A stretch of DNA of 64,000 nucleotides, from contig MU008170.1 in NCBI GenBank assembly GCA_010909165.1, forward strand, positions 682,001 through 746,000. The letters are read 5' to 3'. Position 1 is the first letter of the stretch. Each line of letters begins with the position of its first letter. Under the pieces are notes generated by a model. It was given only the letters and a program-made list of their open reading frames with translations. It did not search any database and was not told the DNA's origin. Source of the stretch: Anthoceros angustus (Eukaryota; Plantae; Anthocerotophyta). Both the position numbers and the translations under genes were made by a program. Below, in pieces: positions 12,284 through 61,089 of this stretch.

Positions 12284-12449
12284 CAATATCAAAATGCTTA
12301 AAGAGTACTTGCTCTCTCTACGATTTTTGAGGCTTCTTGTTTACAACTTAATGCATATAATTTTGTCCTTTCAAAAGGTAGATCTGAATCCATTTTCATA
12401 ATGGTAGGCTCGTCCGCATCTTCACCCACATCCACATTTACTCCAGCAG

Positions 12450-35150: not shown

Positions 35151-35183
35151 AACAACATAATATTTGAAGCGGCTGAATATACA
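35151..35183 (+). repeat. Left terminal inverted repeat
   Basis: AACAACATAATATTTGAAGCGGCTGAATATACA, preceded by AGGC (35147-35150). Confidence 0.88.
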
Positions 35184-35587
35184 AAGCCGCTTCTGCAGAA
35201 AAAAAAACCAACTGCGGGAAAACCTGGTGGGCACTGAATTCCGCGATTCAGACGTTTTGGTTTTCTTGGAGATGGTTCATTCCTTCCCTTCCCTTCGGCA
35301 TCAGCTACTTTTCTCGTCGAGTGCACACGGTATCAATGTACGTCTTGTGAAAGCCCCAATGGTCTTTTGGTGATATTCGATCGGTCTTTGGTTGTCATTG
35401 CTTTAACACCTACTTGGAAAGCAATACACAGCACTAAAAAGCAATAAAAGATTAAAGAGGATGTTTGCGGACGCCAGCATGCCGGCGCCACGGAAATTTC
35501 TAATTTGGCTAAGCGAGCGTAAAGTTTCCAATAACCTAACTACCAAAATCTTAGCGGCTTGAGTCTCGGGTGGGCATTGCCCGGTCG

Positions 35588-37560
35588 CTATCCAACACAA
35601 CATCGGCGTTTACGAGGAGGCGTGGGGTCCTCGAAGTTGTCGTTCTCCTGCATGGCATTCTCCACATCTAAAAGACCAGGAGGACTGCTTTGTTGTAGTC
35701 TGGATGCCACCGCTCGAGTTCTGCCGTCATCAAGGATTTGCCCGTTTTCTCTTTCATCTGTTGAACCCCAAAGTACGACACAGCTTGCAGTGACCCTTCT
35801 CGGACAAGCTTAATTCCTTTGCCAGGTGGGCGGTCCTCGTCGGTGTGGCTCATGATTCAATTCCTCCTCAGCGTTTGGAAGTACCTCATATCCATGTATC
35901 CTTTGGGGAATGAATTCCGCACATCGTTTGTCCAAGTCCACGGCGATGCAATTGCGGATAGCATTTGCTAGTGTCGTCGTCACTTCACTGCGCATCTAAT
36001 ATCCAATCTCCTTCTTGGAGAAGTTGTTGATCATCTTACGCATCAACCCTAGTGGCCTATGATAAGCACATACCACGAGCTTGTCCAATGACATATAAAG
36101 AAGCTTCTTGGCAGGTGTTGTGCCCAATGACCGACCATTGTTGAGCGAGCCAAGGGCGGTGTTAGGTAACATTGAAACCTTGTTCTTCTTCTATGGTTAC
36201 CCCCACCCTACCGTGATGTACTCGGCGGTATCATATCCACCTTGATCATTATGCATGTTAGTTTTGTCCCACGAAGGAGACCATCCCTCCACGGTGCACC
36301 ATCGCAGCCTCCCTCACAAGCAGTGCGCCTTCCACCCCATGCATAACTATCATGCGATTTCCTCACAACTCGTCATGTCATGGAAAGAGTGAAACATCGT
36401 GCCCATCCGTGTTTGGTCCATCTTTACATCATGCTTTCCTTTGTTGAATCCCCTGGGCACATCCATAACCAATAAAGTGTAATTCCTCTTCGTAAAAAAC
36501 CTCGTATGTCCAACACATCTCTCGCAACCACTTGGTATTTCACGATACACTTCGTCGTTGGAACAGTGAACGACTGCAGGCCTTCTTCCATGTCCATGTC
36601 AGCTAGGGTCCTTTGTTCGTTCTCCAGACCCTTCCATGTGTGCACTTCCAGTATGAAAGCCTGGAAATCCTCTGGTAGTTTTTTCAAATCTTGCACATCT
36701 TTCACTTGCCGCACAGTCACGTCGGTCGATTGAAAACATTAGTGACAAGTGAGGTAGGGCGGCATGCGGTAGCCTTCCCCACGCCACGCATTAAGCAGCA
36801 AATGATGGGGAGGCGCCGGCATGCGGTGCCCATCCTCAATAGTCTTAAAACAAATGAAATGTACCTTTCCATTGAACTGTTTGAAACCGTGCAATAACAT
36901 CATCCGAAGAGTGCATAGGGTATTCCTGCCTAACCATCTCGAAGAAGTCACATCCTAAATGTTTCGCCATCGCCACTTGGATGACATGAAGTTTCTTCCG
37001 CAGTATCACCTCCTTGGACATACCATTCAGGTCCAGTAAACCTGTCAAAACCTTTTCCGTCACACTAATCAGCATTTTCTGACCCGTCTCTCCTGGTGGA
37101 ATTCCTTGGAAAATGTTCTCTCACTCTGTCCATCACAAGCAGCAAGCACACTGTTAGACTGCAACACTACATCCAAGGATGATGGAGAATGCACTGTAAG
37201 CAAGATGTATACTCACATTCTCAGCTCTGAACGCTTCTCGAAAAGTGCTGGACAACTCCTTCGGTTCACATTTCTTCCTGTGCAGACAGGCCACTTTCAA
37301 CAAACACACAGTATAGTCATCTGACGATGCCGGCAATGTGTCCACTTCATGAGGCCTTGAAGTGCAGAATCCTGATTCACAGGTCTCGCTGCCTCCATCC
37401 AAAGTTGCCCACAGGACCCATCCCCTTGCCTTTGGTTTGCAAGTGCAGATTGAACCCAAAACCCAAAGCTTCAAAGATAGGCGTCCATACCAGTTCTTCT
37501 CCTCTGTTTGTGTCAATAGCCATTCCTACGCGGAAGCATAGTGTCCTCAAGCTGGTTCAT
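35588..37560 (-). pseudogene. Beta-class amino (N4C/N6A) DNA methyltransferase-like gene with N- and C-terminal extensions; frameshifted in this assembly
   Basis: YQVVARDVLDIRG..NYTLLVMDVPRG (motif IV-like, 36452-36463); YHRPLGLMRKMINNFSK (motif X-like); EGDWILDA..TTT (motif I-like, 35991-36014); RNCIAVDLDKRCAEFIPQRI. The order IV..X-I-II is the N6_N4_Mtase beta arrangement. Tail ends PPRKRRCCVG*. Confidence 0.75.
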
Positions 37561-37672
37561 GTGCCTCTGGAAGACCACATGTACACTAACCCTCCCTGGA
37601 CTATTGGTTTGAATGTTTTTTTGTTTTCTTATGTTTTGTGTGATGGAGTGCTTAGGAAATGTCAGGCAAGGC

Positions 37673-37811
37673 CTTTTATACTAAAAATGGTCCTTGGCCC
37701 ATGACAATATTACTTTTACAAATAATTAGTCCTTGGGCCTCGAACATGAATATCGAGGCCGCTAGAAGGTCCTTGGACCTTGGGATTTTAGGAATAAAAT
37801 TGTCTATATAA
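37673..37811. promoter_or_regulatory. Putative divergent promoter with opposed TATA boxes
   Basis: TATAAAAG on the minus strand at 37673-37680, ~120 bp upstream of the MTase ATG; CTATATAA on the plus strand at 37804-37811, upstream of ATG 37831. Confidence 0.4.
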
Positions 37812-37830
37812 GGTGGGGATCCTTCATTCA

Positions 37831-38312
37831 ATGAGGCCGGGAAGAAGTGGAGCGGCACCTCTGGAGAAGTTCGGGAAGCTAGCGGAGAGGTATAAGCGGA
37901 GAGAGGTGAGGCTAGGGCCGGGGTCAAGGGAGGCGAGCAAGCGAAGAAGGGTAGAGCAACGACCACCACGGGTGGCGGAACCACCACGGGTGGCGGAACC
38001 ACCACGGTGGTGGAGCCGCCATCGTCGCGGAAGAAGGACCCAAGGTGGGGAAGCCACCACGGTGGTGGAGCCGGCCATCGTCGCGGAAGAAGGACCCAAG
38101 GTGGGGAAGCCACCGTCGAGCGTAGGAGGATGCAACTCCCTCGAGTTCGAGCGGCCGGCCAGGATTGTCCACGGAGCCGGGCATACCCTTCACGGGTTGT
38201 GCTCGAGGAAATGAGCAAGGCGGAGGCTAGAGCATGGACGAAGGAGCGCCGCAGTTTGGCTGTCAGCGATGAGGCGAGAAGCGTCTTGCGCGAGGCGATG
38301 GGCGCCTCCTAG
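37831..38312 (+). other. Small cargo ORF-like region of unknown function (TTVVEP repeats); coding strand uncertain; second copy ~40660-41125
   Basis: MRPGRSGAAPLEKFGKLAERYKRR..TTVVEPAIVAEEGPKVGEAT..VLEEMSKAEARAWTKERRSLAVSDEARSVLREAMGAS*, with frameshifts; the minus strand is also open. Confidence 0.3.
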
Positions 38313-41300
38313 GAGTGAAGGGACCTCGGATAAGCGGGAGTGAGGTGGAGATATTAAGGGAGGATCTTTGGATCGGGCGTGGTAGGAGGCGGGGAACACC
38401 CATGGGCCGGGCTAGGCGGCCACCAGCGGAGGCGCGATTTTAGAGGGCGGCATCAGGTCGCTTTCACTTGGATTAGAGGATAAGGTGCTAGGAAGCTTGT
38501 GAATTTGTAGATACCAGAATTGGTAGGCGCTTGTGGTAAGTTAGCCATCTTTAAACCTTTGGAGGTAGGTTAGCCATCTTTAGACCTTTGGGAAAGTGAG
38601 CTATGGCGCTGCGACGGATGTATAAGAGACCCTTGAGTGTCTCTCTTAGACAATTTGGTGTGAGCTCCGTGTGAATTTGTGCGCGTGGTTGGTTGGAGAC
38701 ATCCGATCGATGATGGGCTGATTCGGTGTCTTGTCCTCTCGTCACAAGAGGGGAGATCCTGGATGGTCGAGTGAGTGACCAAGCTCACGTGCAGGGTGAC
38801 TAGTGGTGAAGGTGCTCAATGCATGCGGGAGGAAATTCCAGAGGGCCGGTGAGATCGCTGTGGAGCCGACCACTGTTTTCCTTTCCCAACCCATGTCTAA
38901 CAGTTGTGTCTAATCCCAAGGGAGGGTCTGTGTGGCCCAAGGAGGGTCATGTGGCCCAAGAGAGGTGCATGTGTGGCACAGGAGGGTCATGTGGCCCAAG
39001 GAGGTGCAATGTGGCCCAAGAGGGAGTGCAGCTGGGAGGTGTGGCCCAATGTGGCGAGGAGGATCTGTGGAACATCTTGTCGGTGGTGGTGTATGAGGTC
39101 CTGGAAGAAAGGGGTGAGTGAGTCGTTGTGTGAAGTCTAGGAAGTGGTGGCGAGAGTGGAAAATGCGGAGCCGAGGAAGGTTGGGAATAAATTGTGGGGT
39201 CGAGGAGGAAATTAGGCGGAGTGAGGTGCCGCGTGCGTGGCCATGGTGTACATCCACCGGTGAGCTGGGTGTGAATCCACAGGCACATCCATAACCAATA
39301 AAGTGTAATTCCTCTTCGTAAAAACCTCGGATGTCCAACACATCTCTCGCTACCACTTGGTATTTCACGATACACTCGTTGGAGCGATGAGCATTGCAGG
39401 CCTTCTTCCATGTCCATGTCGCTAGGGTCCTTTGTTCGTTCTCCGGACCCTTCCATGTGTGCACTTCCGATGAAAGCACGGAAATCCTCGTAGTTTTTCA
39501 AATCCTGCACATCTTTCACTTGCCGCACACGTCACCCGTCAGGTCAGTGCTCAAAAACGATGTGACAATGGTAGGAGTGGGAAGGCGCGGCATGCCGGCC
39601 TTCCCCTACGTAACAAGCGAAATGATGGGGAGGCGGCATGCGGTGCCCATCCCCACTCCTATTAGTTTTAAAACAAATGAAATGTACCTTTCCATTGAAC
39701 GCTGTTTGAAACCGTGCAATAACATCATCCGAAGAGTGCATAGGGTATTCCTGCCTAACCATCTCGAAGAAGTCACATCCTAAATGTTTCGCCATCGCCA
39801 CTTGGATGACATGAAGTTTCTTCCGCAGTATCACCTCCTTGGACATACCATTCAGGTCCAGTAAACCTGTCAAAACCTTTTCACACTAATCAGCATTTTC
39901 ACCGTCTCCGGTGGAATTCCTTGGAAAATGTTCTCTCACCTGCATCCATCTGACAAGCACCGTTAGATCGCAACACTACATCCAAGGATGATGGAGAATG
40001 CAATCGTAAGCAAGATGTATACTCACATTCTCGCCTCGAACGCTTCTCGAAAAGTGCGGACAACTCCTTCGGTTCACATTTCTTCCTGCGCATGTGCCAC
40101 TTTCAACAAACACATAGTCATCGGCGATGCGGCAATGTGTCCACTTCATGAGGCCTTGAAGTGCACAGAATCCGCAGTTCTGGGTCTCGCTGCCCTCCAT
40201 CCAAAGTTGCCCACAGGACCCATCCTGCCCTTGCCCTTTGGTTTGCAAGTGCACCGTTGAACCCAAAAACCCAAAGCTTCAGCATAGGCGTCCATACCAC
40301 AGTTTCTTCATCCGGCTCCTCTGTTTGTGTCAATAGCCATTCCTGCTGCAGAAGCATAGTGTCCTCAAGCTGGTTCATGTGCCTCTGTGGAAGACCACAT
40401 GTACACTAACCCTCCCCTGGACTATTGGTTTGAATGTTTTTTTTTGTTTTTCTTATGTTTTGTGTGATGGAGTGCTTAGGAAATGTCCGAGGCAAGGCCT
40501 TTTATACTAAAATGGTCCTTGGCCCATGACAATATTACTTTTACAAATAATTAGTCCTTGGGCCTCGAACACATGAATATCGAGGCCGCTAGAAGGTCCT
40601 TGGACCTTGGGATTTTAGGAATAAAATTGTCTATATAAGGTGGGGATCCTTCATTCGACAGGGGCCCAGGAAGAAGTGGAGACGCTGGCACCTCTGGAGA
40701 AGTTCAGGAAGCTAGCGGAGAGGTATAAGCGGGAGAGAGGTGAGGCTAGGGCCAGGGTCAAGAGGCGAGCAAGCGAAGAAGGGTAGAGCACACCACGGTG
40801 GTGGAGCCACCACCGTCATGAAGCCACCACGGTGGTGGAGCCAGCCACTGTCGCGGCAGCCACCACGGTGGTGGAGCCGGCCATCGTCGCGGAAGAAGGA
40901 CCCAAGGTGGGGGAAGCCACCGTCAGGAGCGCTGTAGGAGGGGATGCAACTCCCTCGAGTTCGAGCGGCCGGCCAGGATTGTCCACGGAGCCGGCATACC
41001 CTTCACGGGTTGTGCTCGAGGAAATGAGCAAGGCGGAGGCTAGAGCATGGACGAAGAGCGCCGCAGTTTGGCTGTCAGCGATGAGGCGAGAAGCGTCTTG
41101 CGCGAGGCGATGGGCGCCTCCTAGGAGGAGTGAAGGGACCTCGGATAAGCGGGAGTGAGGTGGAGATATTAAGGGAGGATCTTTCGGATCGGGCGTGGTA
41201 GGAGGCGGGGAACACCCATGGGCCGAGGCTAGGCGGCCACCAGCGGAGGCGCGATTTTAGAGGGAGCGCATCATAGGTCGAGGCTTTCACTTGGATTAGA

Positions 41301-42306
41301 GGATAAGGTGCTAGGAAGCTTGTGAATTTGTAGATACCGAATTGGTAGGCGCGCTTGTGGTAAGTTAGCCATCTTTAAACCTTTGGAGGTAGGTTAGCCA
41401 TCTTTAGACCTTTGGGAAAGTGAGCTATGGCGCTGACGGATGTATAAGAGACCCTTGAGTGTCTCTCTTAACAGACAATTTCAGGTGTGAGCTCCCGTGT
41501 GTCGAATTTGTGCGCGTGGTTGGTTGGAGACATCCGATCGATGACGGGCTGATTCGGTGTGCTGTCCTCTCGTCACAAGAGGGCCGGGGAGATCCCTGGA
41601 TGGTCGAGAGCTGAGTGACCAAGCTCCGCGTCTGGGGTGACTAGTGGTGAAGGGTGCTCAATGCATGCCAGGAGAGGGAAATTCCCGCAGGGGACCGGGG
41701 TGAGATCGCGGGTGTGCGAATCGCCTGTGGAGCCGACCAGCTGTTTTTTTCCTTTCCCAACCCGCTGTCTAACCAGATTGTGTCTAATCCCAAGGGGGTC
41801 TGTGTGGCCCAAGGAGGGGTCTGTGTGGCCCAAGGTGAGGTCTGTGTGGCCTGAGGAGGGGTCTGTGTGGCCCAAGGAGGTCTGTGGCCCAAGGAGGGGT
41901 CTGTGTGTGGCTGCGGCCCAAGAGAGGTCATGTGGCACAGAGGAGGATCTGTGGGAACATCTTGTGCGGTGGTGTGAGGTCCTGGAAGAAAGGGGTGAGT
42001 GAGTCGTTGTGTGAAGAGGAGTCTAGGAAGTGGTGGCGCGAGGAGTGCAGGCGAGCCGAGGAAGGTTGGGAATAAATTGTGGGGTCGAGGAAATTAGCGG
42101 CGGAGTGAGGTGCCGCGTGCGTGGCCATGGTGTACATCCACCGGTGAGCTCGGTGTGAATCCACATGAGTGTGACTTGGTGTACATGTGAACTGCGGTGC
42201 ATAGGACCATAACCCTTAGCAGGCGTGGCGGGGGCCGGGCGCCAAATAGTCGATCGCGGCAGCGTCGCCCGGAGTGGGTCCCACCACGTTGGTTGAACTG
42301 AACTCA

Positions 42307-42886
42307 CCGCGGTGGCGGAACCCTGCAGCGGTGGCGAACCCCACCGGAACCCTGCAGCGGTGGCGGAACCCACCACAGCGGTGGCGGAACCCACACGGCG
42401 GTGGCGGAACCACCACGGTGGCGGAACCCTGCAGCGGTGGCGGAACCCACCAGCGGTGGCGGAACCCACCACAGCGGTGGCGGAACCCCACGCGGTGGCG
42501 AACCCACCAGCGGTGGCGGAACCCACTACGGCGGTGGCGGAACCCACCACGCAGCGGTGGCGGAACCTGCACGGCGGTGGCGGAACCCTACGGCGGTGGC
42601 GGAACCCTGCAGCGGTGGCGGAACCCCACGGCGGTGGCGGAACCCACCACGCAGCGGTGGCGGAACCCACCACGGCGGTGGCGGAACCCACCACGCAGCG
42701 GTGGCGGAACCCACCACGGCGGAACCACCACGGTGGCGGAACCCCACCGGCGGTGGCGGAACCCCACGGCGGTGGCGGAACCCTGCAGCGGTGGCGGAAC
42801 CCTGCAGCGGTGGCGAACCCTGCAGCGGTGGCGGAACCCACAGCGGTGGCGGAACCCTGCAGCGGTGGCGGAACCCTGCAGCGTGG
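42307..42886. repeat. 18-21 bp GC-rich quasi-palindromic array, copy 1
   Basis: (GCGGTGGCGGAACCCACCAC[G] / GCGGTGGCGGAACCCTGCA)n. Confidence 0.95.
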
Positions 42887-44544
42887 TCGAACTTCGCCAT
42901 GGTCGTGGGCTCCCAGCAGTAGTTGATTATGTTGTAGGAGGAGGACTAGAATCCATAGTTTTGGAACATCTTGACACAAAACCATTCCCTTGGGATCGAA
43001 TCCTAGGACTATAACGACATAGAGGGTAAATGTGGCCTCTTTTGTCTTGGATGCAAAACCCATTCCGACCTCACATTGCATTGCATTCTCTCATCACAGT
43101 ATGGGAGGGAATTGGATATGGATTTCCACCCTCAATGCTTTGGACAAGCGGACTTCTCTCCACCACCATTCGCCTTTGTGGTGCTTGCCTTGGCAGGGTG
43201 AGTGACCCGAGACTTTGTCGCCTTCCGTTCCCCTCCACGTGCTCAAGTGGTTGGAAAGCATGGCCGGCCAGGCGAGGACCGGCATCGGGCGTGGAGGATC
43301 TGTGGTTATTGATTTCGCCTCCTTCTTCTAGCTTTCTTCGCCTCGCGGCTTCTCAACAAGTCTCTGTGGTTTGGCCACGCGCATCGTGAGGTCAGTCTTA
43401 CTGCGGCGTCCGGCTCGCCATCGTCTGCGGGCAACATGGGGATCAAACACGCTAATGCGGATTAGGGCAAGCACCAATTCCATTGCAACCAAGGGATTCC
43501 TCACGCAGCCGTGAATGCGATGGATGGAGGCTGGTGGCGGTCTCTCACGCCAAATTCACAAAAACCACGCGCGGCCTCGCAGATCGCAGAGATGCTCGCG
43601 TTGGAAGAGCTTGCGTTCGCCCATTGTTAACTTTCGATTTGGGTTGAACAAGGACTTCAACTCGGTTCGGGTTTTAAGGAGCCGACATCAAACCCTAATT
43701 TCGATGCATGTAACCATGTATAGCAGGTCCAGTTATTGTCCTTATCGTGTATGGAGGAACATGGACTGGAATATGTGGGTGTCGCGTTTTGTTGCATTAA
43801 ACCACGTATGGTTGAACCGTGATGGGTATACCAGTACGGTTCGGCGTTCGCGATGTCGCGCACTATCCATTCCAGCTCGGTTTGCAGGCACTTTGACTCA
43901 ACTACATTTGTTTATGTATCTTTGCATGCGAGCAAGCCTAATATGAAATGGGTGTGTAAGAATGCGTTTCATAACGTTCCGTGCACCCTTATTTTCCAGC
44001 CGCTATTGATGGCTTCCGCCATTTAGTTTAACCTATGGCATCGCTTCACGGTGGCGGATAGTAGCATAATAGCACCGGGCCCTCCATTACTTGAAATCTA
44101 TTTAGGATTTGGCAATCAAGTGTTTTGTCTCTCAACGGCTTCCCGCCTCCTCCGAGGTCAAGTCATGTACCACAAGACCACGGCTTTTATCAGCACTTGA
44201 CGTGGAGGTTGTAGCGCGGATGTATAAGAGACCCTTGAGTGTCTCTCTTCAATTTGAGTGTAAGCTCCGTGTGTCGAATTTGTGCGTGGTTGGTTGGAGA
44301 CATCCGATCGATGATGGGCTGATTCGGTGTCTTTGTCCTCTCGTCACAAGAGGGCCGGGAGATCCTGGATGGTCGAGAGCCGAGTGACCAAGCTCCGTCT
44401 GGGGTGACTAGTGGTGAAGGGTGCTCAATGCATGCCAGAGAGGGAAATTTCAGGGACCGGGGTGAGATCGCGGGTGTCTGAATCGCTGTGGAGCCGACCA
44501 TTGTTTTCCTTTCCCAACCATTGTCTAACAGTTGTGTCTAATCC

Positions 44545-44690
44545 CAAGGAGGTCATGTGGCCCAAGGAGGGTGCATGTGGCCCAAGAGGTCTGTGGCCCA
44601 AGGAGGTGCATGTGGCCCAAGGAGGGGTCTGTGGCCCAAGAGAGGTCTGTGTGGCTGCGGAGGTGCATGTGGCCCAAGAGAGGTCTGTGG
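44545..44690. repeat. ~21-bp array AAGGAGGGGTCTGTGTGGCCC (also ~38930-39050 and ~41800-41940)
   Basis: Repeated gtggcccaaggagg units read directly. Confidence 0.85.
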
Positions 44691-44778
44691 CTCGAGAGAG
44701 GAGGATCTGGGAACATCTTGTGCGGTGGTGTGAGGTCCTGGAAGAAAGGGGTGAGTGAGTCGTTGTGTGAAGAGGAGT

Positions 44779-46216
44779 CTAGGAAGTGGTGGCGCGAGAG
44801 TGGAAAATGCGGAGCCGAGGAAGGTTGGGAATAAATTGTGGGGTCGAGGAGGAAATTAGCGGCGGAGTGAGGTGCCGCGTGCGTGGCCATGGTGTACATC
44901 CACCGGTGAGCTCGGGTGTGAATCCACATGAGTGTGACTTGGTGTACATGTGAACTGCGGTGCATAGGACCATAACCCTTAGCAGGCGTGGCGGGGGCCG
45001 GGCGCCAAATAGTCGATCGCGGCAGCGTGCGGCCAGGTGGGTCCCACCACGGTGGCTGAACCAGCCACGCGGTGGCGAACCCACCACGCAGCGGTGGCGG
45101 AACCCACCGCGGCGGTGGCGGAACCCTGCAGCGGTGGCGGAACCCACCAGCGGTGGCGGAACCCACCAGCGGTGGCGGAACCACCACCGGTGGCGAACCC
45201 ACCACGCAGCGGTGGCGGAACCCACCAGCGGTGGCGGAACCCACCACAGCGGTGGCGAACCCTGCCACGGTGGCGGAACCCTGCAGCGGTGGCGGAACCC
45301 TACGCGGTGGCGGAACCCTGCAGCGGCGGAACCCACCAGCGGTGGCGGAACCCCACGGCGGTGGCGGAACCCACCAGCGGTGGCGGAATCCACCACGGCG
45401 GTGGCGAACCCACCAGCGGTGGCGGAACCCCACGGTGGCGGAACCCACCACGCGGTGGCGGAACCCACCACGTGGCGGAACCCTGCAGTGGCGGAACCCA
45501 CCACGGTGGCGGAACCCACCACGGCGGTGGCGGAACCCACCACGGTGGCGGAACCCCACGGTGGCGGAACCCTGCAGCGGTGGCGGAACCCACCACGGCG
45601 GTGGCGGAACCCACCACGGCGGTGGCGGAACCCACCGGCGGTGGTCGAACTTACCATGGTCGTGGGCTGCCGCGTAGTTGATTATGGTCGGGTAGGAACC
45701 CGGTTGTAGGAGGACTAGAATCCATAGTTTTGGAACATCTTGACACAAAACCATTCCCTTGGGATCGAATCCTAGGACTATAACGACATAGAGGGTAAAT
45801 GTGGCCTCTTTGCGTCTTCGGATGCAAAAACCCATTCCACAGCCTCCGCAGCTGCATTGTCTCTCATACGAGTATGGGGAGGGAATTGGATATGGATTTC
45901 CCACCCTCAATGCTTTGGACAAGCCAGACTTCTCTCCACCGTCTACCGCTGCCTTTGTGGTGCTTGCCTTCGCAGAATTGAGTGACCCAGACTTTGTCTG
46001 CCCCCTTCCCGTTCCCCCTCCACCGTGCTCAAGTGGTTGGAAAGCATGGCCAGCCCCAGAGGCAGAGACCGGCATCTGGCGTGGAGGATCTGTGGTTGTT
46101 GATTTCGCCTCCTTCTTGCTTCTAGCTTTCTTCTGCCTCCGCGGCTTCTCCAACAAGTCTCCAGGGTTTGGCCCTGCATCAGGGAGGTCCGTCTTACTGC
46201 GGCGTCCGCTCGCCAT
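44779..46216 (-). CDS. Putative spliced cargo gene of unknown function; the repeat array lies in its predicted intron
   Basis: 5'UTR intron CAG|GTGAGG..GCTGCAG| followed by ACGATGG start at 46216; ~187-aa exon MASGRRSK..IINYAAAHDH; donor G|GTAAGT at 45654, acceptor CCGCAG| at 44955; exon 2 VHMYTKSHSCGF..RATTS*. Confidence 0.45.
45068..45645. repeat. 18-21 bp GC-rich quasi-palindromic array, copy 2
   Basis: Same unit as 42307-42886. Confidence 0.95.
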
Positions 46217-48178: not shown

Positions 48179-48757
48179 ATGGATTCCCTTAGTAAGAGGA
48201 GGCCTAGAGTAAAGAAAAGAGATTGCCCTGCAAGACAACAAGAACAAGTTAGGAGCAAGAACATTAGAAGCAATAGAAGTTCACACATCATAGCAGGAGA
48301 GATTGATGAAACCTCTTTCTGCATAGCTAACTTCATTGCATCTATTCTAATTTCTAAACCAGATCAAGGGAAGTTGATTGAGCTAGCTAGACGTGATTTG
48401 CTAGAATTTCTTAGCCCAATTCACGTCAAAGCATTAGAGCTAGCAATCCAACATATCCCGAATTTGAGAGCCGGTACTAACACTCCTAATTCTTATAGTC
48501 TACAAGGCCAAGACATAGAAACTCATAAAATTGACGACCTAGATAGACAACTATCATCTCTTAGAATCCAACATCTTGATCTCAAGGGAGAGCTAACTGA
48601 ACTAAGGACAATGGTGTCCAGTCTCTCTAAGTTTATAGATGTGCAGGAATTTCCAAGCAGGTCGTCATCTCCTAATGCAGGTTATTACCCAAGGGAGGAG
48701 TTTCGAGCATGCAACAGAGAAGATGAAAAGCTATACCACCGAGGCTTAGTCCTCTAG
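48179..48757 (+). CDS. Extra ORF between PBS and gag of Copia 2, coiled-coil-like C-terminal half
   Basis: 192-aa open frame ending 11 nt before MAGVFNDEEE (gag); IDDLDRQLSSLRIQHLDLKGELTELRTMV has a heptad pattern. Confidence 0.55.
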   Translation: MDSLSKRRPRVKKRDCPARQQEQVRSKNIRSNRSSHIIAGEIDETSFCIANFIASILISKPDQGKLIELARRDLLEFLSPIHVKALELAIQHIPNLRAGTNTPNSYSLQGQDIETHKIDDLDRQLSSLRIQHLDLKGELTELRTMVSSLSKFIDVQEFPSRSSSPNAGYYPREEFRACNREDEKLYHRGLVL

Positions 48758-51700
48758 ATCGCCTTCTATGGCTGGAGTATTTAACGACGAAGAAGAAGTT
48801 TCAGCGTCACCAAACACACCCAGGATGGATCCTCCTGGAAATACTAATCATACTTTGATTAATCATTATGGTGACAGCTTTGAAGAGAAGGACAGGTTCA
48901 ATGGAAAGAATTATTATGTTTGGGCTATATGGATGAAAGGAGCCTTACGACAACGAGATCTCTGATAAATAGTCGAAGGAAGACTTCCCAGACCCACTGA
49001 AGGTTTTGAAGCACACCTTCGAACTTCCTGGGACGCCAGGGACGAGAAGGCGCAAGACCTTATTATCAGTGGACTTTCGGAGCAGATGGTGATACAAGTA
49101 GGTCATGCAAAGACCTCCCACGACATGTGGACTCAGCTTGCTCAACTCTACTCCTCAATGGATGTTATGAGTATCGTTGCCGCCTCCCGTAATTTCCGCA
49201 ATCTTCAAATGAAGGAGTCTGATTCCATTGAACACCATATAAGTGCTTTTCGACTGGCGAGATCTCAACTTGAAGCTGCAAGTGGCATCCTTGTCCATGA
49301 GTTGGAAGCATATGTTATCCTTCTATCTTCTTTGCCGCCATCATATAGAGCTTTTGTCACAACTCAAAATGCTGTCTTGCGTAATGCAAGAAGGGAGGCA
49401 GACGAGAATCCACAAGCAGACATTAAGCTCAGCATCGCCGAACTCATAGGAGCATTGATGCAAGAGGAATCAAGTCGGCAACACTTCAGAACCAATAAGC
49501 AACAAGTGACGTTCACTGGAAGGGGCAACGGAAGAGGACGAGGCAGAGGCCGAGGTTCTACTTCCCAACGACCCCAGAGTTCCAATGACAACTCTCGGAG
49601 ACGAGAGACTTCTTCTTCAACACCTGCAAGAGGTACCAAGAAGAAAGGCATCATTTGTAATTGGTGCAGGATCCCAAATCACATGGAAAAGGACTGTTAT
49701 AAGAAAAAGAATGGCGAGCCTAGAAAGGAGGCCGCACCTGGAGCTCATGTTGCTGTGAAGAAACAATCTTTCACAACACCATCAGCTCTCACTGTATGTT
49801 TGGCATCATCGAAGTCAACAAATCCAAATTGGTACTTGGACAGTGGAGCTACGTCACACATCTGTCACAGCAGAAACTCATTTGAGTCCTATTCGCCAGT
49901 ATCAGGATACCAAACTGTTCTGCTGGGCGATGACCACAACCTCCCATCTCTGGTGTAGGTTCAGTCGCTCTCAGATGTTCTTCAGGCCAAATTCTCTCCC
50001 TCAAAAATGTCCTTCATGTACCATCCATGTGTAAAACTTTAGTGTCAGCTGCTAGTTTATGTTCACAACATACTTTGCAGGTTATCCTAGATGCAGATAG
50101 TTGTATCATCTCTTATTTCCCGAGTGAGTCACTAGTCATCTGCACAGGCACTTTAGAGGACGGGTTATACAAACTGTCTGTCCGAGTGGGAACTACACAT
50201 GATAGGATACATGTAGCTTCTCAAAACTCTGTCACTTCTAATACAAAAGCACTCTGGCATTGTAGATTAGGTCATCCTAATAGCCAAAAACTTGTACAAA
50301 TGTCTAAGGGAAATTTATATAGAAACCCTTCCCTTACAAAGATAGAACCTCTATCATGGTGTGAATCTTGTGTCGTCACTAAAAGACATCAGGCACCCTT
50401 TCAAAACCACTCTCCCCAGCGGGCTAAGGGACCCCTTGAGTTAGTTCACACCGACATTTGCGGCCCAATCTCTGCACCATCCTTTAGCGGTTGCAGATAT
50501 TTCCTTACTTTTATTGATGATTTCTCCCGCTTTACCACAACATACACCCTTAAACACAAGAGTGAAGCTTTCCAGCATTTTAAGGATTACATGATGTGGG
50601 CGGAGAGACTTACAAAGAAGAAACTCAAGACACTGCATAATGAAGAGTTTATTTCAAGGCTTTTACCGACTTTTGTCGAGCACAAGGAATAGCTCAACAA
50701 CTTACGGTGGTTTATACACCCCAGCAAAATGGTGTAGCCAAAAATAAGAATCTCCGCCTTCAAGAAGTCACAGCTGTTGCTCACCCAAGCAAGGTTAGCT
50801 AAACCATATTGGGCGAAATGATAATAAAGAACCTACATAATTAATCGACTTCCAACCTCAGCGGTTAAAGGTATAACACCTTATGAAGCATTCACTGGCA
50901 GAAAACCTTCCATCGACCACCTTCGGGTATTTGGCTATACGGCATATGTTTATATTCCTAAATCACAGCGCAAAAAGTTAGATGACAAGGCTGCCAAGTA
51001 TACCTTTATTGGTTATACCGAAGGTATCAAAGGATACAAATTATTTGATCCAGTTACCAGGCGACTCATATATGCAAGGAGCGTTACCTTTCATGAGTCT
51101 CCCCTCCTATCACCGGTGGACTCTAGATCTCTTGTTTTCGTCCCCAACGATAATAATACGGCCACATCTTTTGATGATGATGAATTCATCAGCCTACATT
51201 ATTCTCCTTCCTCTACTTTGGTTGAACCCATAGTGCAGGAGGAGGAGGAGCCACCTTCTCCAAGACGACCAACTACTCCAGATCCAGATATGCAAATTCC
51301 TTTACACATTGAGGATTATCTGGATGAAGAGGAGCGTGCCTTAGAAGATATGGACAATGAAGAGCCGGTTCCCCCCTTAAATGAATCAGCTCTTGAAGCA
51401 CCTCCTGAAGACCCTGAAGCAGTAGATAACACTTCAGAATAAGTCGTCAACGAAGATGTACAACCTGCACCAAGGTACAACCTAAGAACCAGACCTGCTG
51501 TCTCAGGGCCCGCAAGATGGAAGGAACCACCATTAGGATACCTTACCACTTTTGATGATCCCTCTTCACCTTTCTCCCTTTTTCATCAAGTGTACAAAGA
51601 AGCTGATCCAAGAGCCTACAACCTTAAAACAAGCTTTTTCCTCTCCTGAGAAGGATCTATGGAAAGTTGCAGTGGACTCTGAGTATGACCCCCTAGTTAA

Positions 51701-52696
51701 GAACTCTACATGGGAATTGGTCAAACCTCCCAAAGGGAGAAAAATAGTTGGGAGTAAATGGGTATTCAAAATTAAACGCAAGGGTGATGGTTCCATAGAG
51801 AGATATAAGGCAAGACTAGTAGCCAGAGGTTTTACCCAGATACCCAGGTTTAGATTACATACCCTGGGCTACCTATGCTCCAGTAGCAAAGTTTGCCTCC
51901 TTTAGAATTATAATTGCCTTGTCTGCTCAACATGGTTTACATCTTCATATGATGGATGTCAAAACCGCTTATCTGCATGGCCGAATCCAAGAAGAAATAT
52001 AAACCTGAGGGTTATGAAGTCAAAGGCAAAGAAGACATGGTATGTAGGCTAATCAAAGGTCTCTATGGCCTAAAACAATCTGGAAAGGAATGGAACAAGG
52101 ATATACATGACAAGCTCATCAAGTATGGCTTTATACAGTCAAAGCAACGCTGATGCAAGTATGTATATTTTAAAGACAAAACATAACACAATTTACCTCT
52201 TACTTTATGTGGATGACTTATTTTTAGCATCATCCTCACTCTCCCATCTAGCTGAAGTTAAAGCTTGGTTAAGAAGTCACTATGAAATGACAGACTTGGG
52301 AGAACTCAATTATGCTCTTGGCGTGAATATTATAAGAGATAGAGGTAACAAATCCATTTCCTTAGTTCAGACAAAATATATAAAGGAAAGTTTAGCCAAG
52401 TTTGGACTTGAGGACGCTAAACCAGCCGCTACACCATTTCCTAGTGGCACAAGGCTCACATCAGAGATGAGCCCTAAATCAAATGCTGAAAAAGAAGAAA
52501 TGTCAGCTGTACCATATAGACATGCTGTTGGTACATTAATATACTTAAGCAACTTCACAAGACCTGACATATCTTTTGAAATTAGTGCTGTCTCACAATT
52601 TTTGGAGAACCCTGGACTACAACATTTGCAATGCGTCATGAGGATATTCAGGTATCTAAAAGGGACTATGCACACTGGCTTAATGTATAAACATAC

Positions 52697-55600
52697 CCAA
52701 GGCATATCCAAGCTAAATTTAATATCTTTGATCATATCGGAGACCCAGACTGAAAATCAGCCCGCTATGTTCTATTCTTTGGGAGGAGCTCCCATTTCAT
52801 GGTCAAGTAAAAATCAGAGAAGCTGCTTATCCGTTCCCAACCGTCCACAGCCCGCGGCGGAATGCGGCGGCCGTTGGCCCGTCTGCCTCGCACCACCAAT
52901 GGGGTGGCAAGGGACGGTTGGGAGCAGATAACTTTCGGTTTATCAAAACATAGAGGTTCCCCATCTAAGCCGATCCGAACCTAGGGCGCTTAACTCCGGA
53001 GTTTTGATGGAGCTACGTGGCACAACAACAACAACAACTTTATTTATGTCCACTAAGGATGGAAGAACCATCATGGGACGAGAGATAGTCTGTAAAAAGA
53101 GGTTTAAAAACCGAGTACACTTACGTGCGTCTGAACTAGAAGGCGACTGTATGAGGGAAGGCAGGAAAGAAGGCAAAGACTACTAGGAGTCCAACAAGGA
53201 TGCCGAAGATCAAGAAGCTCGAGAGACATAGTCCAGAGCCTAGGAATGTGGAAGAGAAAATCTGCGCAAGCGAGAAGGCACATTCAAAAGGTACCAATCC
53301 GTTAGACCACTCCATTGTAAGGTTTTGTATATTATCTTCACCTTTTAGCTTTAGTTTATGGTTTTAAGCTAATAGCTTTAGATTAAGTGGGAGTCTATTG
53401 ATGTTTTAGACCTCATTTTAAAGCTAGAGTTCACCCTACATTCATAATGAGTGGGAGTGATGAAATATATCTAGTTTAGGGCACTATTCATTAGGGCCAC
53501 ATCATAAACATTATTTTATCATCTAGGGCATTAGATAGTTATCTATTTAGTTGCTTTAGGTAGTTAGTTGTTAGTAGTTACAACAACTTGGTAGTTACAA
53601 CAACATATTGTTATAACCACCTAACCACCTCAACCACTTAGCCTATATAAAGGCTTGTACTTTACTCTTTAATTCATTCATTGCATTGTACTACTTTGCA
53701 TCTAAGAGCAAGACGTGATTTTCATCGATACATCGAATGAGAAGTTTGGATCGGGCCGATCTGCCGTCACTTACCATCCGAAGCCTTTGGGCGATACCCT
53801 TCAGCCTAGCAGCGATGTGGGCTTCCGTGTGCAGAAGCGCCGAGCGGCTGGTGTGTCTTTGAGGAAAAGTGAAGGCGATTCTGTGGGAGAGGATTTCCGA
53901 AAGCCTTGTTGCAACAAATTGTGCATCCGCAAGTTCACAAAAGAAGCTTTTCATGAGGCAGTGCGGGTTTTCGAGAATGGGCGAGCCGAGCAAGAGACAT
54001 TTACGCAATCGCCGGCGATTTCTAGGGAACAAGGGACGGTTTTCACTCACCTCATGGGTCGATTCCTATGCAATGTTGTTTGAAAGCCTTAGGCGTGTAT
54101 CATAGGGTCCACAAGGTACGAGGAGTTGAAGCGGATAGTTATTAGATGCACCATGGGACGCTAATAAGGCCAACCCTGTGTACAATCCTCCCATGCTTTG
54201 GCTACAATTGCACGGATGCCACTTTCCTTCACTTGGCCGGCGACTATCGAATGTGGAGGTATACAATCTACCGCTTTCAAGCATGAGGTTTGGATACAAT
54301 ACAAGAGTGGAATGGAGTCGAAGGTGAAGCGCTTTGTGTCGTATGCATATTTCTTGCTGGGGTCGAATTTCAAGCGGGTGAAGATACCCAAGTCAAACAG
54401 TTCTCAACTTGTTCCATGCGCTGGGTGAAGTTCAACATACGGAGCACCGATCAAATACCAAGGTAGGCCTCCTCCCAGCGGTCATCGTATGCATGGCGGA
54501 AGCATGTGGAGTAATGAAGGAGTTAGCGATGGATGGTGCCCGTACTGGGTGGCGGTGACATATCGGGAGCCGCCGTGCTGGCACCGCGTTGCTTTGTATG
54601 CGGGCGGTCGCCCTCCACCGCACGTAAAAAGCAGCCGGCATGGCGGCACCATAATGTCTGATGAAGGGCAGCATGGCGCCTCAAGTGACAATGGCGCCCG
54701 TGAAGAATCGGGATGGCCTTGCACTCCAATGGCGAGCCCTCGTGGTGCCCTCATTTGTGGCGGAAGGCGGCCATGGCGGGCATCCACTCCACACTTGAGC
54801 GCGGCATGCCGGGCTCTCATGTGGAGTGGATGGATAGGGCATGGCGCGCCCCAAACCGCAGTAGCGGTGAACTACGGTGCTTTGTCTCTGGAGGCGTTTG
54901 CACCTCCTCCAGGCACTGATGTGCTTGCATGCCCGTGCCCTCCAAGGTGCATTGGAGGTTCACTCCAACGTTGGAAGGGGGGCATGTCGACAGCCTGCTG
55001 TGGTCAGGGAATCCATGGTTTGGGTACTTGCCGTAAAAGCCATCAAAGGAGCGGGCCCGATGACGGTGTCTGGAACAAAAGTCAAGAACTCAAGCCCATC
55101 TTCAGATTCCCACAAGGGGGAAGTGGAGTATTGCTTACGCAGTAACCTTTCCCGTCCAACTTTGTCCTCATGTAATTTTGAGCTGTCTTTGAAATGAAAG
55201 GTTGTTCAACTTAGGAGCTTGTTGTATACTTACGCCGTTCACTAATTGTAATGGCCATACATATGTCCAGGAAGTCAGCCACCTCATCAACACTTTCACC
55301 TCTGGATTGGCGTGAGCAGACTTCAATATGTCCTCCATAGTTAGCAATGACCGGCCTCCTTATGTTTTAAATGCTTAGAGAAACAAGAAAACATTTGATC
55401 CACTTGGTCGCGTGATCGTGCCCCACGAGGAGGAATCCAACCTTCACCTTCTTGAGCGTCCGAGTTCAACAAGTATTCCGCAAATAGAAGGCGCTTCTTG
55501 TTCTCTCCATGTATTTGCGGTATAAGACTTGGGAAGTATCCCTGCGTGTGTATAACGTCATGGATAATAGTTATTGTTAAATTTGCATCATTCCTAAGAT

Positions 55601-58600
55601 TGGCATAATGCAAATCGCCCGAGCGATGTAATTATGTATCATGCATCCAACAACATGCCTTTGTGATCAGAACTATCCTCCTTCAAGTCCTTTGGCCACC
55701 TCAAAATATCTTATGTGATGTTTTACGGTCCATGCCGTCGATAGATAACAACATATATTTTTAAGGCTCCTTATGACGACCGATGCTTCGTCAACTTCTT
55801 CCGTTCCTCCATCGATCGTGTCCGATGCTTGTTGAATGCCTCTTGATACATAGCTGTATGGTATGTCATGGAACACCAAGGCATATCCAAGCTAAATTTA
55901 ATAGCATATGCCGATGTCGACTATGCCGGAGACCCGCATAAACAAAATCAGATCCGGCTATGTTCTATTTTGGGAGGAGCTCCCATTTCATGGTTTGGTC
56001 AGAGGCCGCTTATCCGCTCCCAACCGCCCCAGCCTGCAAAGGGGCCGCCGCTGGCGACGCCCCCTCGCACCCACCAATGGGGTGGCAAGACTGCTTGGGA
56101 AATAAGCGCTCCGTTTTTATTCATCAAAACATAGAGGTTCCCCATCTCGCACCGATCCGAACCTAGGCGCTTAACTCCGAGTTTTGATGGAGCTCTGTAC
56201 AACAACAACAACAACAACTTTATTTTATGTCCACTAAGGATGGAAGAACCATCATGGGACGAGAGATAGTCTGACGTAAAGAGGTTTAAAAACCGAGTAC
56301 ACTTACGTCTCAACTAGAGAAGCGACCTGTATGAGGGAAGCAAAGAAGGCAAAGACTACTAGGAGTCCAACAAGGACTGCCGAAGATCAAGAAGCTCAGA
56401 GAGACATAGTCCAGAGAGCCTAGGAATGTGGAAAGAGAAAAATCTGCGCAACGAGAAGCCGGCACATTCAAAAAGGTACCAATCCCGTTAGACCACTCCA
56501 CGAGCTGTAAAGGTTTTGTATATTATCTTCACCTTTTTAGCTTTAGTTTATGGTTTTAAGCTAATAGCTTTAGATTAAGTGGGAGTCTATTGATGTTTTA
56601 GACCTCATTTTAAAGCTAGAGTTCACCCCTACATTCATAATGAGTGGGAGTGATGAAATATATCTAGTTTAGGGCACTATTCATTAGGGCCACATCACTT
56701 AAACATTATTTTATCATCTAGGGCATTAGATAGTTATCTATTTAGTTGCTTTAGGTAGTTAGTTGTTAGTAGTTACAACAACTTGGTAGTTACAACAACA
56801 TATTGTTATAACCACCTAACCACCTCAACCACTTAGCCTATATAAAGGCTTGTACTTTACTCTTTAATTCATTCATTGCATTGTACTACTTTGCATCTAA
56901 GAGCAAGACGTGATTTTCATCGATACATCGAATGAGAAGTTTGGATCGGCCGACCGTCACTTACCATCCGAAGCCTTTGGCGATACCCTTCACCTAGCAG
57001 CGATGTGGGCTTCCGTGTGCAGAAGCGCCGAGCGGCTGGTGTGTCTTTGAGGAAAAGTGAAGGCGATTCTGTGGGAGAGGATTTCCGAAAGCCTTGTTGC
57101 CACAAATTGTGCATCCGCAAGTTCACAAAATAAGCTTTTCATGAGGAACGGTACAGGTTTCTGAGAATGGGCAGAGCCGAGCAAGAGACATTTCTGCAAT
57201 CGCTTGTGCGGCCTGATTTCTAGGCCAGAACAAGGGACAGGGTTTTCACTCACCTCATGGGTCAGATTCCTATGCAATGTTGTTTGAAAGCCTTCCGACG
57301 TGTATACTGCATAGGGTCCACAAGGTACGAGGAGTTGAAGCGGATAGTTATTCTGAATGCACCATGGGACGCTAATAAGGCCAACCCTCGTGTACAATCC
57401 TCCCATGCTTTGGCTACAATTGCCTGGATAGATGCCACTTTCCTTCACTTGGCCGAGCGACTATCGAATGTGGAGGTATACAATCTACCAGACACTTTCA
57501 CGAAGCATGAGGTTTGGATACAATACAAGAGTGGAATGGAGTCGAAAGGTGAACGCTTTGTGTCGTATGCATATTTTTGCGGCCGGGGTCTAATTTCCGG
57601 TGAAGATACCCAAGTCAAAGATTCTCAACTTGTTCCATATGCGGGTCAAGTTCAACATACGGAGCACCGATCGGAATTGACCAAGGTAGGCCTCCCGCTA
57701 TTGCGGTCCGTCATGGCATGGCGAGAAGCATGTGGAGTAATGAAGGGAGTTAGCAGTGGATGGTGCCGCGGGCATCTGTGGCGGCGTGACATATCGAGCG
57801 CCGCATAGCACCCGACACGTTGCTTTGTACGGCGCAGTGCCGGAGCCCTCCACCGCACAGAAAAACGAGCCGGCATGGCGGCACCATAATGTCTACAGTG
57901 AAGGGCACTGGCATGGCGCCGCCTGACAAACTGGCCGGCCGCCGCCGCTTTTGCCGTGAAGGGCTCCGGGATGGCCTTGCACTCCAATGGCGAGGCCCTC
58001 GGCTGCCGGTGCCCTCATTTGTGGCGGAGAGGGGCGGCCATGGCGGCGCCATCCACTCCACACTTGAGGGCGCCGGCATGCCGGTACCCTCATGTGTGGA
58101 GTGGATGGATAGGGCATGGCGACGCCCCCCAAGGCACTGCAGCGCGGTGAACTACGGGTGCTTTTTTGTCTACAGAGGAGGGCGTTTGCACCTCCTCTCG
58201 GCACTTCAGTGTGCTTGCATGCCCGTGCCCTCCAAGGTGCATTGGAGGTTCACTCCAACGTTGGAAGGGGGGCATGTCGACAGCCTGCTGTGGTCAGGGA
58301 ATCCATGGTTTGGGTACTTGCCGTAAAAGCCATCAAAGGAGCGGGCCCGATGGCGGTTCGGAACAAAGTCAAGAACTCAAGCCCATCTTGATTCCCACAA
58401 GTGGAGTATTGCTCTGCTAATGGTAACCTTTCCCGTCCAACTTTGTCCTCGCGGGTAATTTTGAACTGGTGCTGAAATGAAAGGTTGTTCAACTTCCGGA
58501 CCGCAGCTGTATACTTCCGGCCGCCGTTCACTAATTGTAATGGCCATACATATGTCCGGAAGTCAGCCACCTCTGTCAACACTTTCACCTCTGGATTCGG

Positions 58601-59206
58601 CGTGAACGAAGACTTCAATATGTCCTCCATAGTTAGCAATGACCGGGCCTCCTTATGTTTTAAATGCTTAGAGAAACAAGAAAACATTTGATCCACTTGG
58701 TCGTGCGTATGCCCCACGAGGAGGAATCCAACCTTCACCTTCTTGAACGTCCCGAGTTCAACAAGCATGTTCAAGTACGCAAATAGAAGCTGCTTCTTGT
58801 TCTCTCGGCATGTATTGTCCAGCTGCAGGTATAAGACTTTGGGAAGTATCCCTTCGTACGTGTGTATAACGTCATGGATAATAGTTATTGTTAAATTTGC
58901 ATCATTCCTAAGATTGGCATAATGCAAATACGCCCGCGCTCTGAACGTGTAATTATGTATCATGCATCCAACAACATGCACTGTGATCCGACTATCCTCC
59001 TTCAAGTCCTTTGGCCACCTCAAAATATGCGGCAGAGATGTTTTTTTCTGGTCCATGCCGTCGATAGATAACAACATATATTTTTGCGGCTCCTTGTACG
59101 ACTTCGACCGATGCTTCGTCAACTTCTTCCGTTCCTCCATCAGTCGTATCCGATGCTTGTTGAATGCCTCTTGATACATAGCTGTATGGTATGTCATGGA
59201 ACACCA
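52697..59206. repeat. Head-to-tail duplication D4 (~52697-55878 / 55879-59206), creating a third LTR at 56651-56922
   Basis: aaggcatatccaagctaaattt recurs at ~52699 and ~55878; cca microhomology; both copies end at gtcatggaacacc. Confidence 0.9.
53025..53350 (-). mobile_element. 5'-truncated LINE 3' end with (TTG)n tail inside Copia 2 (second copy ~56205-56530)
   Basis: Minus strand ends ccttagtggacataaataaagttgttgttgttgttg; degenerate YLFEC..LIFG..TGRF resembles the C-terminal end of LINE ORF2. Confidence 0.55.
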
Positions 59207-61056
59207 TTGTCAGACTTGTGGGCACCGAAATTCAATATCTTTGAAGACAGCACAGCTATTTGGGAAGACTGAAGTGACGTGCATTGAAACTGAGATCAGA
59301 AACTAGGACATAGGCATACTGCTGCCTATTATTCCACAGTCCAAATGCATAGTGATAGTAATGCATACAATCTGACAGCGCCTGCAGGAAGTCAGGCGGG
59401 CGAAGGACAAGAAAGCTAGTGATTGGGGTTTGACCGCACGTGAAGGCGTGGATCACTTGAAAAAAGGACTGGTGAAGCTACCAACATATTTGACTGCTGT
59501 GGAGGAAGAATGGTGGATGGATTTCTGGAATGATCAACACGAAATCGCAAATATTGTGGATCATAACATTGGGCTTGTTCTGCAAAACCCCTGGAGATGG
59601 TACGATAGGGCTGCCATCAAGCCCGAGTCCCCTTTGCACATACCTAAGAAGTCAGATCGACGAGGCTCTTTTGCGTGACATACCACACAGGGACATGTAT
59701 CTAGGGGCCTACCAAACTATTGAACGCCAAGAAGAGGTGGCAAGAAGGATGGATGGCGATATAATGGAGATACAGAAAGGAATGTTTATTGTGACACCGT
59801 GCGAGGGTGACACACACAATAGGGCGTTCTGGGTAGCGAAGGTTGTAAGTGTGCACCTTGGGGCCACTGAACCGTATTTGCTTGTGCACTGGTGGCGAAC
59901 TGAGCACACGGATGCTTATGAGGGCAAGTATGTTGGAGAATTTTTTCAAAGGACTGAAACTGACATTGGACCACCTGCCAAAAAAAGGTCAGGGAAAGTG
60001 CAAAGGGCCCCCAACATCCAAAAGGTTTTTGTGCGAAAAACCGTTATTATATACTACGGTTTCACTCACTTCAGAAACATCAGTACGCAGCAGATAAGAA
60101 AGCTATAAAGGAAAAGCTGAGTGCGCTCCGTCCTCACATTCAACCAAACACTTGGATGAGGCAATGGAGAGTGATGAAGATGGAGATGAGGCCTGTGTGG
60201 ACGGGGACAAGGGTCTCGATAAAGTAAGAGTAATGACATGTGCTAAGCAATCAAATAACAAGGGAACCTTATGTTTATCCCTAATTTCTCTTCATGGCAT
60301 AGGGTTTGAAATTCGGACACGAGGTGTCGGACATAAGTTTCATGTTCTTGTCATACATTGTTTTTAAGACATGCAGGACCACCATGCCGGCGATGAGTAC
60401 ATCTTAAATGTCACCTTGTAGCGTCTACCAGCTTTTGTCATGCTGCAATACACTGGCGCAATACATTGCTTCATTACACATATGCACTAGTCATAAACAT
60501 TTGCCGTTATAGACAGTAACCGGTGATGGCGGACATGGACTGGTTGTGCTCCACTTTCCACCCTCTAGACGTCATATGCTCCCATACTGTGTTAGTTTCA
60601 CAATCGATAACATGTATACAACTGCCGATTCATGCGCCGCGAGCTCGCAAAGATCGCCGCCCATGCCACACCTAACAATCGCCGCATACATTTTCAGCTG
60701 ATATGACAACCTCTACAAAACCCATACCATAGTTGTCTCCATATGTCTCCATGTGATTTTAAATGCAATGAATTGCTGTTCTCGGCCACAATGATTGCAA
60801 CACAAGCCACCGGAAACTCGAACGACCAGCTTTTTTCCCCGCAGGGAGGGGGAGAGAACATGGGTACTTTTCTCGGCGAAACGCATGATAAGCCAGGGAG
60901 AGCACCGTTTTTCCAGTATTGTGGTTGGCACAACTGTGTCTGACCGTGATGTTCACCCTTATTTTCTGTCGTTTTTTGCCGCCTACTCCCAAACATGCCA
61001 TTTTCATAACCATCTTAAACCCGGATCCACGTATATAGACCCCTGCAGCCGCTTCA

Positions 61057-61089
61057 TGTATATTCAGCCGCTTCAAATATTATGCTGTT
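61057..61089 (-). repeat. Right terminal inverted repeat
   Basis: TGTATATTCAGCCGCTTCAAATATTATGCTGTT followed by AGGC (61090-61093). Confidence 0.88.

Follow-up and report, generated by a model that had tools for sequence, protein, structure and literature searches.

A probable dead Sola1-type transposon carrying a methyltransferase relic in the leader of a hornwort Copia element

The closest described counterpart of the locus reported here is Sola1-1_Ec32 of Ectocarpus, a 21.5-kb transposon whose opposite-strand gene joins a ParB-like domain to an N4C/N6A DNA methyltransferase (MTase); its authors classed it by its best blastp match, Repbase Sola1-1_PPa, and listed it with a 4-bp target-site duplication (TSD) and AACCG termini (PMC12477816). 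Earlier green and red algal cases are cited in the same paper, and Iyer et al. described fusions of ParB and helix-turn-helix domains with MTases in chlorophytes and chytrids. We analysed a 64-kb stretch of the genome of the hornwort Anthoceros angustus (contig MU008170.1, positions 682,001 to 746,000; hereafter the window, with positions counted from its first base), in which paired terminal inverted repeats (TIRs) enclose positions 35151-61089. With a probability of roughly 85%, this segment is a dead Sola1-type cut-and-paste transposon of about 11 kb, from a family that carries a three-aspartate (DDD) transposase together with a PF01555 MTase gene, which decayed and was rearranged after insertion into the leader of a Copia element. 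The initial annotation suggested that a Sola element with an MTase gene might be undescribed; the 2025 paper cited above describes a Sola1 transposon with an opposite-strand ParB-like/N4C-N6A MTase gene, and the window copy is a new, dead member of that already described kind.

The ends of the element and the sequences on either side of it are as follows, including the primer-binding site (PBS) and an open reading frame (ORF) of the interrupted Copia.

33126-35146, minus strand: left flank, gag and integrase portion of the host Copia, by a PF14223 gag match and an integrase match
35147-35150: left TSD copy, AGGC, the same as 61090-61093
35151-35183, plus strand: left TIR, beginning AACAACA, 32/33 match to the right TIR
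61057-61089, minus strand: right TIR, 33 nt, pairing with 35151-35183
61090-61093: right TSD copy, AGGC, the same as 35147-35150
61094-62074, minus strand: right flank, leader of the host Copia, including its PBS and a pre-gag ORF of 213 aa, by PBS pairing

By inverted-repeat comparison the TIR arms span 33 nt and are 97% complementary (32/33). Their sequence has only two matches in the window, which are the two ends themselves, with none expected by chance, and a perfect AGGC abuts the outer side of both the left and the right TIR. The right flank contains a tRNA-Met PBS at 62054-62074 on the minus strand, which matches the PBS of a second Copia nested inside the element (see below). With gag and integrase on the left and, on the same strand, the matching PBS and the pre-gag ORF on the right, both flanks derive from one minus-strand Copia, whose leader the element has split. 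The TIRs, the perfect AGGC duplication and the flanks as two halves of one Copia had all been described in the initial annotation and are borne out here, which supports a single TIR-bounded Sola1-type element with a 4-bp TSD.

Just inside the TIRs (35184-35198 and 61042-61056), a 9-nt block, AGCCGCTTC at one end and GAAGCGGCT at the other, occurs in opposed orientation and is followed at both ends by CTGCAG; the TIR of the Riccia element introduced below likewise holds AGCCGCT. Both Copias also have an ORF of about 200 aa between PBS and gag (48146-48754, plus strand, and 61091-61729, minus strand), for which no Pfam match was obtained.

Toward the right end lie the pieces of a transposase gene, listed here with the evidence for each.

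53706-54400: transposase N-terminal part, copy A (tblastn)
54781-54832: copy A counterpart of the palindrome at 58037-58120 (inverted-repeat pairs)
55353-55841, minus strand: decayed duplicate of the catalytic core, with four stops (tblastn)
56993-57805, plus strand: transposase N-terminal (CC..C) part, copy B, with two stops (tblastn)
58037-58120: 84-nt palindrome beside the left breakpoint of the inverted core (inverted-repeat pairs)
58253-59227, minus strand: catalytic core, DUF7869, DDD, with an open frame of 319 aa (Pfam, homologue alignment and tblastn)
59376-60105, plus strand: transposase C-terminal part, spread over two frames (tblastn with P0004, P0007, P0017 and P0019, E 1e-7 to 1e-11)

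The ORF at 58253-59209 on the minus strand matches Pfam PF25273 (DUF7869) with E 3.1e-48. Among its 77 homologues, the named ones come from a fern, the liverwort Riccia and Branchiostoma, and the remainder are mostly assembly or metagenome contigs. Alignment of all 77 gives a D(80)D(41)D spacing, in which D50, D131 and D173 are conserved in 53/57, 76/77 and 72/76 of the homologues that have a residue at the respective position (at least 93%). The conserved aspartates and the PF25273 match together point to the DDD triad of an RNase H-type transposase, as in Sola1, and confirm the DDD transposase previously placed near the right end.

The rest of the gene was located by homology. Copy B of the N-terminal part is matched in tblastn by P0048 (E 4e-16) and by the N-terminal ORF of a relative, L089 (E 4e-14), and the Riccia loci match it as well. 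Homologues align, again in tblastn, with an N-terminal part at 56993-57580 (plus strand), the core at 59227-58274 (minus strand) and a C-terminal part at 59397-60102 (plus strand), and two Riccia loci carry these parts in colinear order on a single strand. In the window copy the catalytic core points the opposite way from the N- and C-terminal parts, and a complete transposase is encoded on no strand, the gene being broken by a Copia within its 5′ exon, by a 3.2-kb tandem duplication and by the inverted core. The earlier description of a DDD core stands, with the correction that the core and the remainder of its gene occupy different strands.

Assignment to Sola1 follows from comparison with the curated transposase: the window ORF and Sola1-1_Ec32 have in common the motifs DNT..ENK and VGHTH.Q.DQ.FSCF, a similarity at the level of motifs that was judged by eye. 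From these eye-compared motifs, the 4-bp AGGC duplication adjoining the 33-nt TIRs and the AAC termini, we file the element as Sola1. The palindromes at 58037-58120 (42-nt arms) and 54781-54832 (26-nt arms) are GC-rich with a perfect centre, and occur once in each duplicate unit of this region.

Near the left end lies what is left of the accessory gene.

35813-36700, minus strand: remnant of the PF01555-type amino-MTase domain of the accessory gene, with six in-frame stops and at least one frameshift (family profile)

The relic was recognised with a family profile, a hidden Markov model (HMM) of 30 transposon-borne PF01555 MTases that were collected with P0199 as query and include a Riccia sorocarpa protein named DNA methylase N-4/N-6. 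This HMM matches 36700-35801 on the minus strand with E 2.1e-11 (38 bits), colinearly over profile positions 86-312 of 367 (227 positions), and has no second match anywhere in the 64-kb window. Judged by this match, the domain is assigned to the transposon-MTase family as a true member, with about 24% identity to its relatives in the alignment. The region 36598-35813 (minus strand) forms one frame with six in-frame stops, which were read through as X for alignment. Motif IV reads DVPRGFN in the window versus D[V/I]PYGF in all relatives, HRP stands where the relatives show QKP, and motif I reads X-MRSEVTTT versus LCCGTGST. The window relic contains neither a (D/N/S)PP(Y/F/W) catalytic motif IV (DVPR here, D[V/I]PY in the relatives) nor an S-adenosylmethionine (SAM)-binding motif I with an FxGxG-type loop in an open frame. 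The MTase is a pseudogene without catalytic aromatic residue, SAM loop or open frame.

The layout of the second gene fits the described kind of element, in that the transposase and a gene with a C-terminal N6/N4 MTase domain occupy opposite strands (relic on the minus strand, transposase N- and C-terminal parts on the plus strand). In the relatives, the accessory protein has a conserved N-terminal domain (GGNHGARA motif) ahead of the MTase. HMMs of that domain, a mere candidate for a ParB-like one, found nothing in the whole window at E<=1, whereas they match Riccia with E 6e-33; by the same HMMs and threshold the window copy has no counterpart of it ahead of the MTase, and a phage ParB HMM was likewise blank on the MTase region. 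The initial annotation was therefore right about a beta-class amino-MTase-like gene near the left end, which is real by the family HMM (E 2e-11), and wrong to treat it as more than a relic. Its proposal that the element writes a non-5mC mark fails for this copy on the six stops, the DVPR in place of D[V/I]PY and the missing FxGxG-type loop. We infer that the window copy can neither transpose itself nor methylate DNA; its intact TIRs could at most be used in trans.

Both genes occur together at four other loci: L087 and L088, contigs of ENA ERZ22866046; L089, a contig of ERZ27311014; and Riccia L090. At the three contig loci, a DUF7869 transposase is accompanied by an opposite-strand gene that ends in PF01555 (N6_N4_Mtase), and the gene order is convergent, unlike the outward-reading window and Riccia elements. 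Intact relatives are recognisable by general means: P0199 matches PF01555 with E 9.6e-9, and the nearest solved structure is M.RsrI (E 0.035). The Riccia locus is a bounded element.

CM100800.1, 2730-12314: Riccia sorocarpa element (locus L090), 9.6 kb, delimited by TIRs and TSD

Its TIRs are 34-37 nt long (2730-2766 and 12279-12314) with TGTT on both sides. A 903-aa DUF7869 transposase is encoded on one strand, the accessory N-terminal domain and the MTase, which retains DVPYGF and CAGSGTT, are encoded on the other, and the two genes point outward, the orientation also seen in the window. The initial annotation had proposed looking for another TIR-bounded copy that contains both genes, and the Riccia element, with its TIRs and TGTT duplication, is one; the four loci together support a family that pairs the transposase with a beta-class (PF01555) amino-MTase. 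No MTase signal was found near the DUF7869 transposase in Riccia L001 and L002 or in L003, L085 and L086, the latter being three contigs of one JGI metagenome.

These five loci without a nearby MTase would fit the idea that the MTase-like segment of the window is no cargo of the TIR element but inserted independently or resembles an MTase by chance, as would the failure of generic MTase profiles and database searches to recognise the segment. We consider this very improbable, given that the family HMM match is strong (E 2e-11), colinear over 227 positions and unique in the window, that the position of the segment beside a TIR and its outward orientation match the TIR-bounded Riccia element, and that the two genes are linked at four independent loci. 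Another alternative is that the two TIRs belong to two different partial copies facing each other instead of one 26-kb element. The heavily rearranged interior speaks for such an origin, but the same 4 bp adjoin both ends, the sequences outside them make up a single Copia leader, and each end bears the gene expected from Riccia, reading outward; an origin from two copies is hardly credible.

Several results weigh against a single decayed transposon with an MTase gene. No significant PF01555 match was obtained, ten stop-free pieces of the MTase region being blank against Pfam at E<=10. A phmmer search of the DVPR piece against PDB gave no match, and an exhaustive phmmer search of the same piece against 1.84 billion proteins returned a single match, a spurious bacterial repeat protein. 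Two pieces of the region had no match in the ESM Atlas, tblastn of the motif-I piece against phages was blank, E. coli YhdJ alone and then a YhdJ-family HMM found no match in the region, and an HMM of 58 phage and bacterial beta-MTases scored -0.9 bits there, which is noise level. Because these generic searches are all blank, the homology of the relic rests on one family-specific profile. The N-terminal domain of the relatives' accessory protein is itself blank in Pfam, with Spo0J as its best PDB match (E 0.22) and a structure model at a predicted local distance difference test (pLDDT) score of 40. Finally, faulty assembly could account for the duplications, the inversion and a share of the stops and indels. 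Numerous small indels separate the duplicates, whose long terminal repeat (LTR) part is near-identical.

The last point concerns the interior of the element, where most of its length resides in three features.

36445-47083: a pair of overlapping tandem duplications in the order X Y X' Y' Z Y'' Z' (self-alignment, 85-88% identity)
47706-53726, plus strand: nested Copia with 271-bp LTRs (97.8% identical), tRNA-Met PBS, gag, integrase and reverse transcriptase (LTR pair and domain matches)
52697-55878 and 55876-59206: tandem duplication with a unit of 3.2-3.3 kb (self-alignment)

The nested Copia sits in the N-terminal coding region (5′ exon) of the transposase. In the block at 36445-47083, the duplicate pairs 36445-39281/39272-42165 and 41437-44215/44217-47076 (2.83 and 2.78 kb) surround GC-rich minisatellites, with 19-bp minisatellites at 42309-42883 and 45043-45644; no protein families were found there, Pfam being blank on 37.6-47.7 kb. 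The 3.2-kb unit comprises the LTR-bearing 3′ end of the Copia, the N-terminal part of the transposase and its inverted core, and the duplication junction at 55878/55879 shows CCA microhomology. Altogether, the 25,939 bp resolve into 10,983 + 6,021 + 3,328 + 2,827 + 2,780 bp, such that the element without the Copia and the three duplications measures 10,983 bp, not far from the 9.6 kb of the Riccia element. The length of 26 kb is a secondary state, made up of an element of about 11 kb, a 6.0-kb Copia and three tandem duplications. This overturns the view of a transposon made giant by its cargo, as about 15 of the 26 kb are nested Copia and local duplications.

The 3.2-kb duplicates are 91.8% identical without gaps and differ at 265 gap positions in 3.4 kb, versus 98-100% identity in their LTR part, a disparity that fits uneven polishing. 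It would be expected if the element were basically intact, an autonomous MTase-bearing giant in which the stops, the inverted core and the duplications are errors of a noisy long-read assembly. Against this, the changes from D[V/I]PY to DVPR and from CGTGST to RSEVTT involve multi-base substitutions and not indels, the accessory N-terminal domain is absent from the entire window at the threshold given above, the nested Copia is equipped with an LTR pair and a PBS of its own, and the inverted arrangement recurs in both duplicate units. Multi-base motif changes and a missing N-terminal domain are unlikely assembly artefacts, and we regard an intact element as quite unlikely.

In the favoured history of a dead, rearranged Sola1-type element, a transposon of about 11 kb would have inserted into the leader of a Copia and produced the AGGC duplication. 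Its family comprises two genes reading outward to the TIRs, a DDD transposase with a DUF7869 core and an accessory gene with a divergent beta-class N6/N4 amino-MTase (PF01555) as its C-terminal half. Once the element was in place, and in an order that can be only partly established, a second Copia would have entered the transposase 5′ exon, three local tandem duplications of 2.8, 2.8 and 3.2 kb would have arisen, the catalytic core would have been inverted, and point and indel decay would have accumulated.

Short motif arrays distinguish the intact relatives. The Riccia element contains the 17-bp palindrome CCCATGCGNCGCATGGG 20 times, all inside the TIR-bounded interval, with none in 12 kb of flanking sequence; L089 (1-9404) contains GATACCGGTATC 22 times, and L087 (1-7424) the 16-mer CCGATGTTTTGATCGG 12 times. 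No comparable element-specific array was found in the window copy. The accessory protein could bind or methylate DNA at these arrays, which offer concrete candidates for its target. A further conjecture, which we hold to be unlikely, is that in intact land-plant relatives the accessory protein recognises element-specific palindromes and marks or coats the element's own DNA, similarly to the loading of ParB on parS, with the hornwort-type DVPR lineage being a binding-only derivative that lost catalysis while the family was still transposing.

Collectively, these results extend the record of Sola1 transposons with an amino-MTase gene from algae to land plants, through the present bryophyte copy and, in the liverwort Riccia, an element with defined ends that appears intact. 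The finding does not demonstrate methylation, of which the window copy is incapable. The analysis also yields a family profile able to detect divergent MTases that Pfam misses and, as a second product, the family-wide D[V/I]PY motif.

Elsewhere in the window, a tandem duplication with a 1.56-kb unit at 99.7% identity lies at 29102-32224, just left of the host Copia fragment. A large array of repeats of about 200-320 bp, 81-99% identical, occupies 6080-11808 and includes a duplicated 1.6-kb block (7950-9551 and 10164-11808), and diverged periodic repeats of about 70% identity at offsets of approximately 300, 600, 900 and 1,200 bp are found at 15799-17806.

Set beside known systems, the window copy resembles Sola1-1_Ec32 in its 4-bp TSD and AAC termini (it starts AACAACA, and the Riccia element AACAGCC), in the succession of CC..C near the N-terminus, (L/V)DNT..ENK and VGHTH.Q(V/I)DQ(M/I)FSCF, in its opposite-strand MTase gene, and in a length above 20 kb with nested transposable elements. 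The Ectocarpus element, however, represents an autonomous family with 282-bp TIRs and a 1104-aa ParB-like and MTase protein, whereas the hornwort copy has 33-nt TIRs, a dead MTase, a rearranged transposase gene, no detected N-terminal/ParB-like domain and a land-plant host. Riccia L090 has the same divergent two-gene layout, TIRs starting AA.AGCCGC, a 4-bp TSD, an MTase of the same family and a transposase 41-45% identical to that of the window; it differs in its 9.6-kb length, 903-aa transposase, intact MTase motifs, detectable accessory N-terminal domain (E 6e-33) and 20 palindromes. Bacterial and phage beta-class N6/N4 MTases (PF01555; M.RsrI, YhdJ/CcrM type) likewise place motif IV before motif I, but have DPPY where the transposon family has D[V/I]PY and the window DVPR. 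MpDN4MT1 of Marchantia and N4CMT of bdelloid rotifers, which were compared by class only, are also eukaryotic genes of bacterial amino-MTase type (10.1101/2021.02.12.428880), although MpDN4MT1 is a sperm-expressed host gene with a TSPPY motif.

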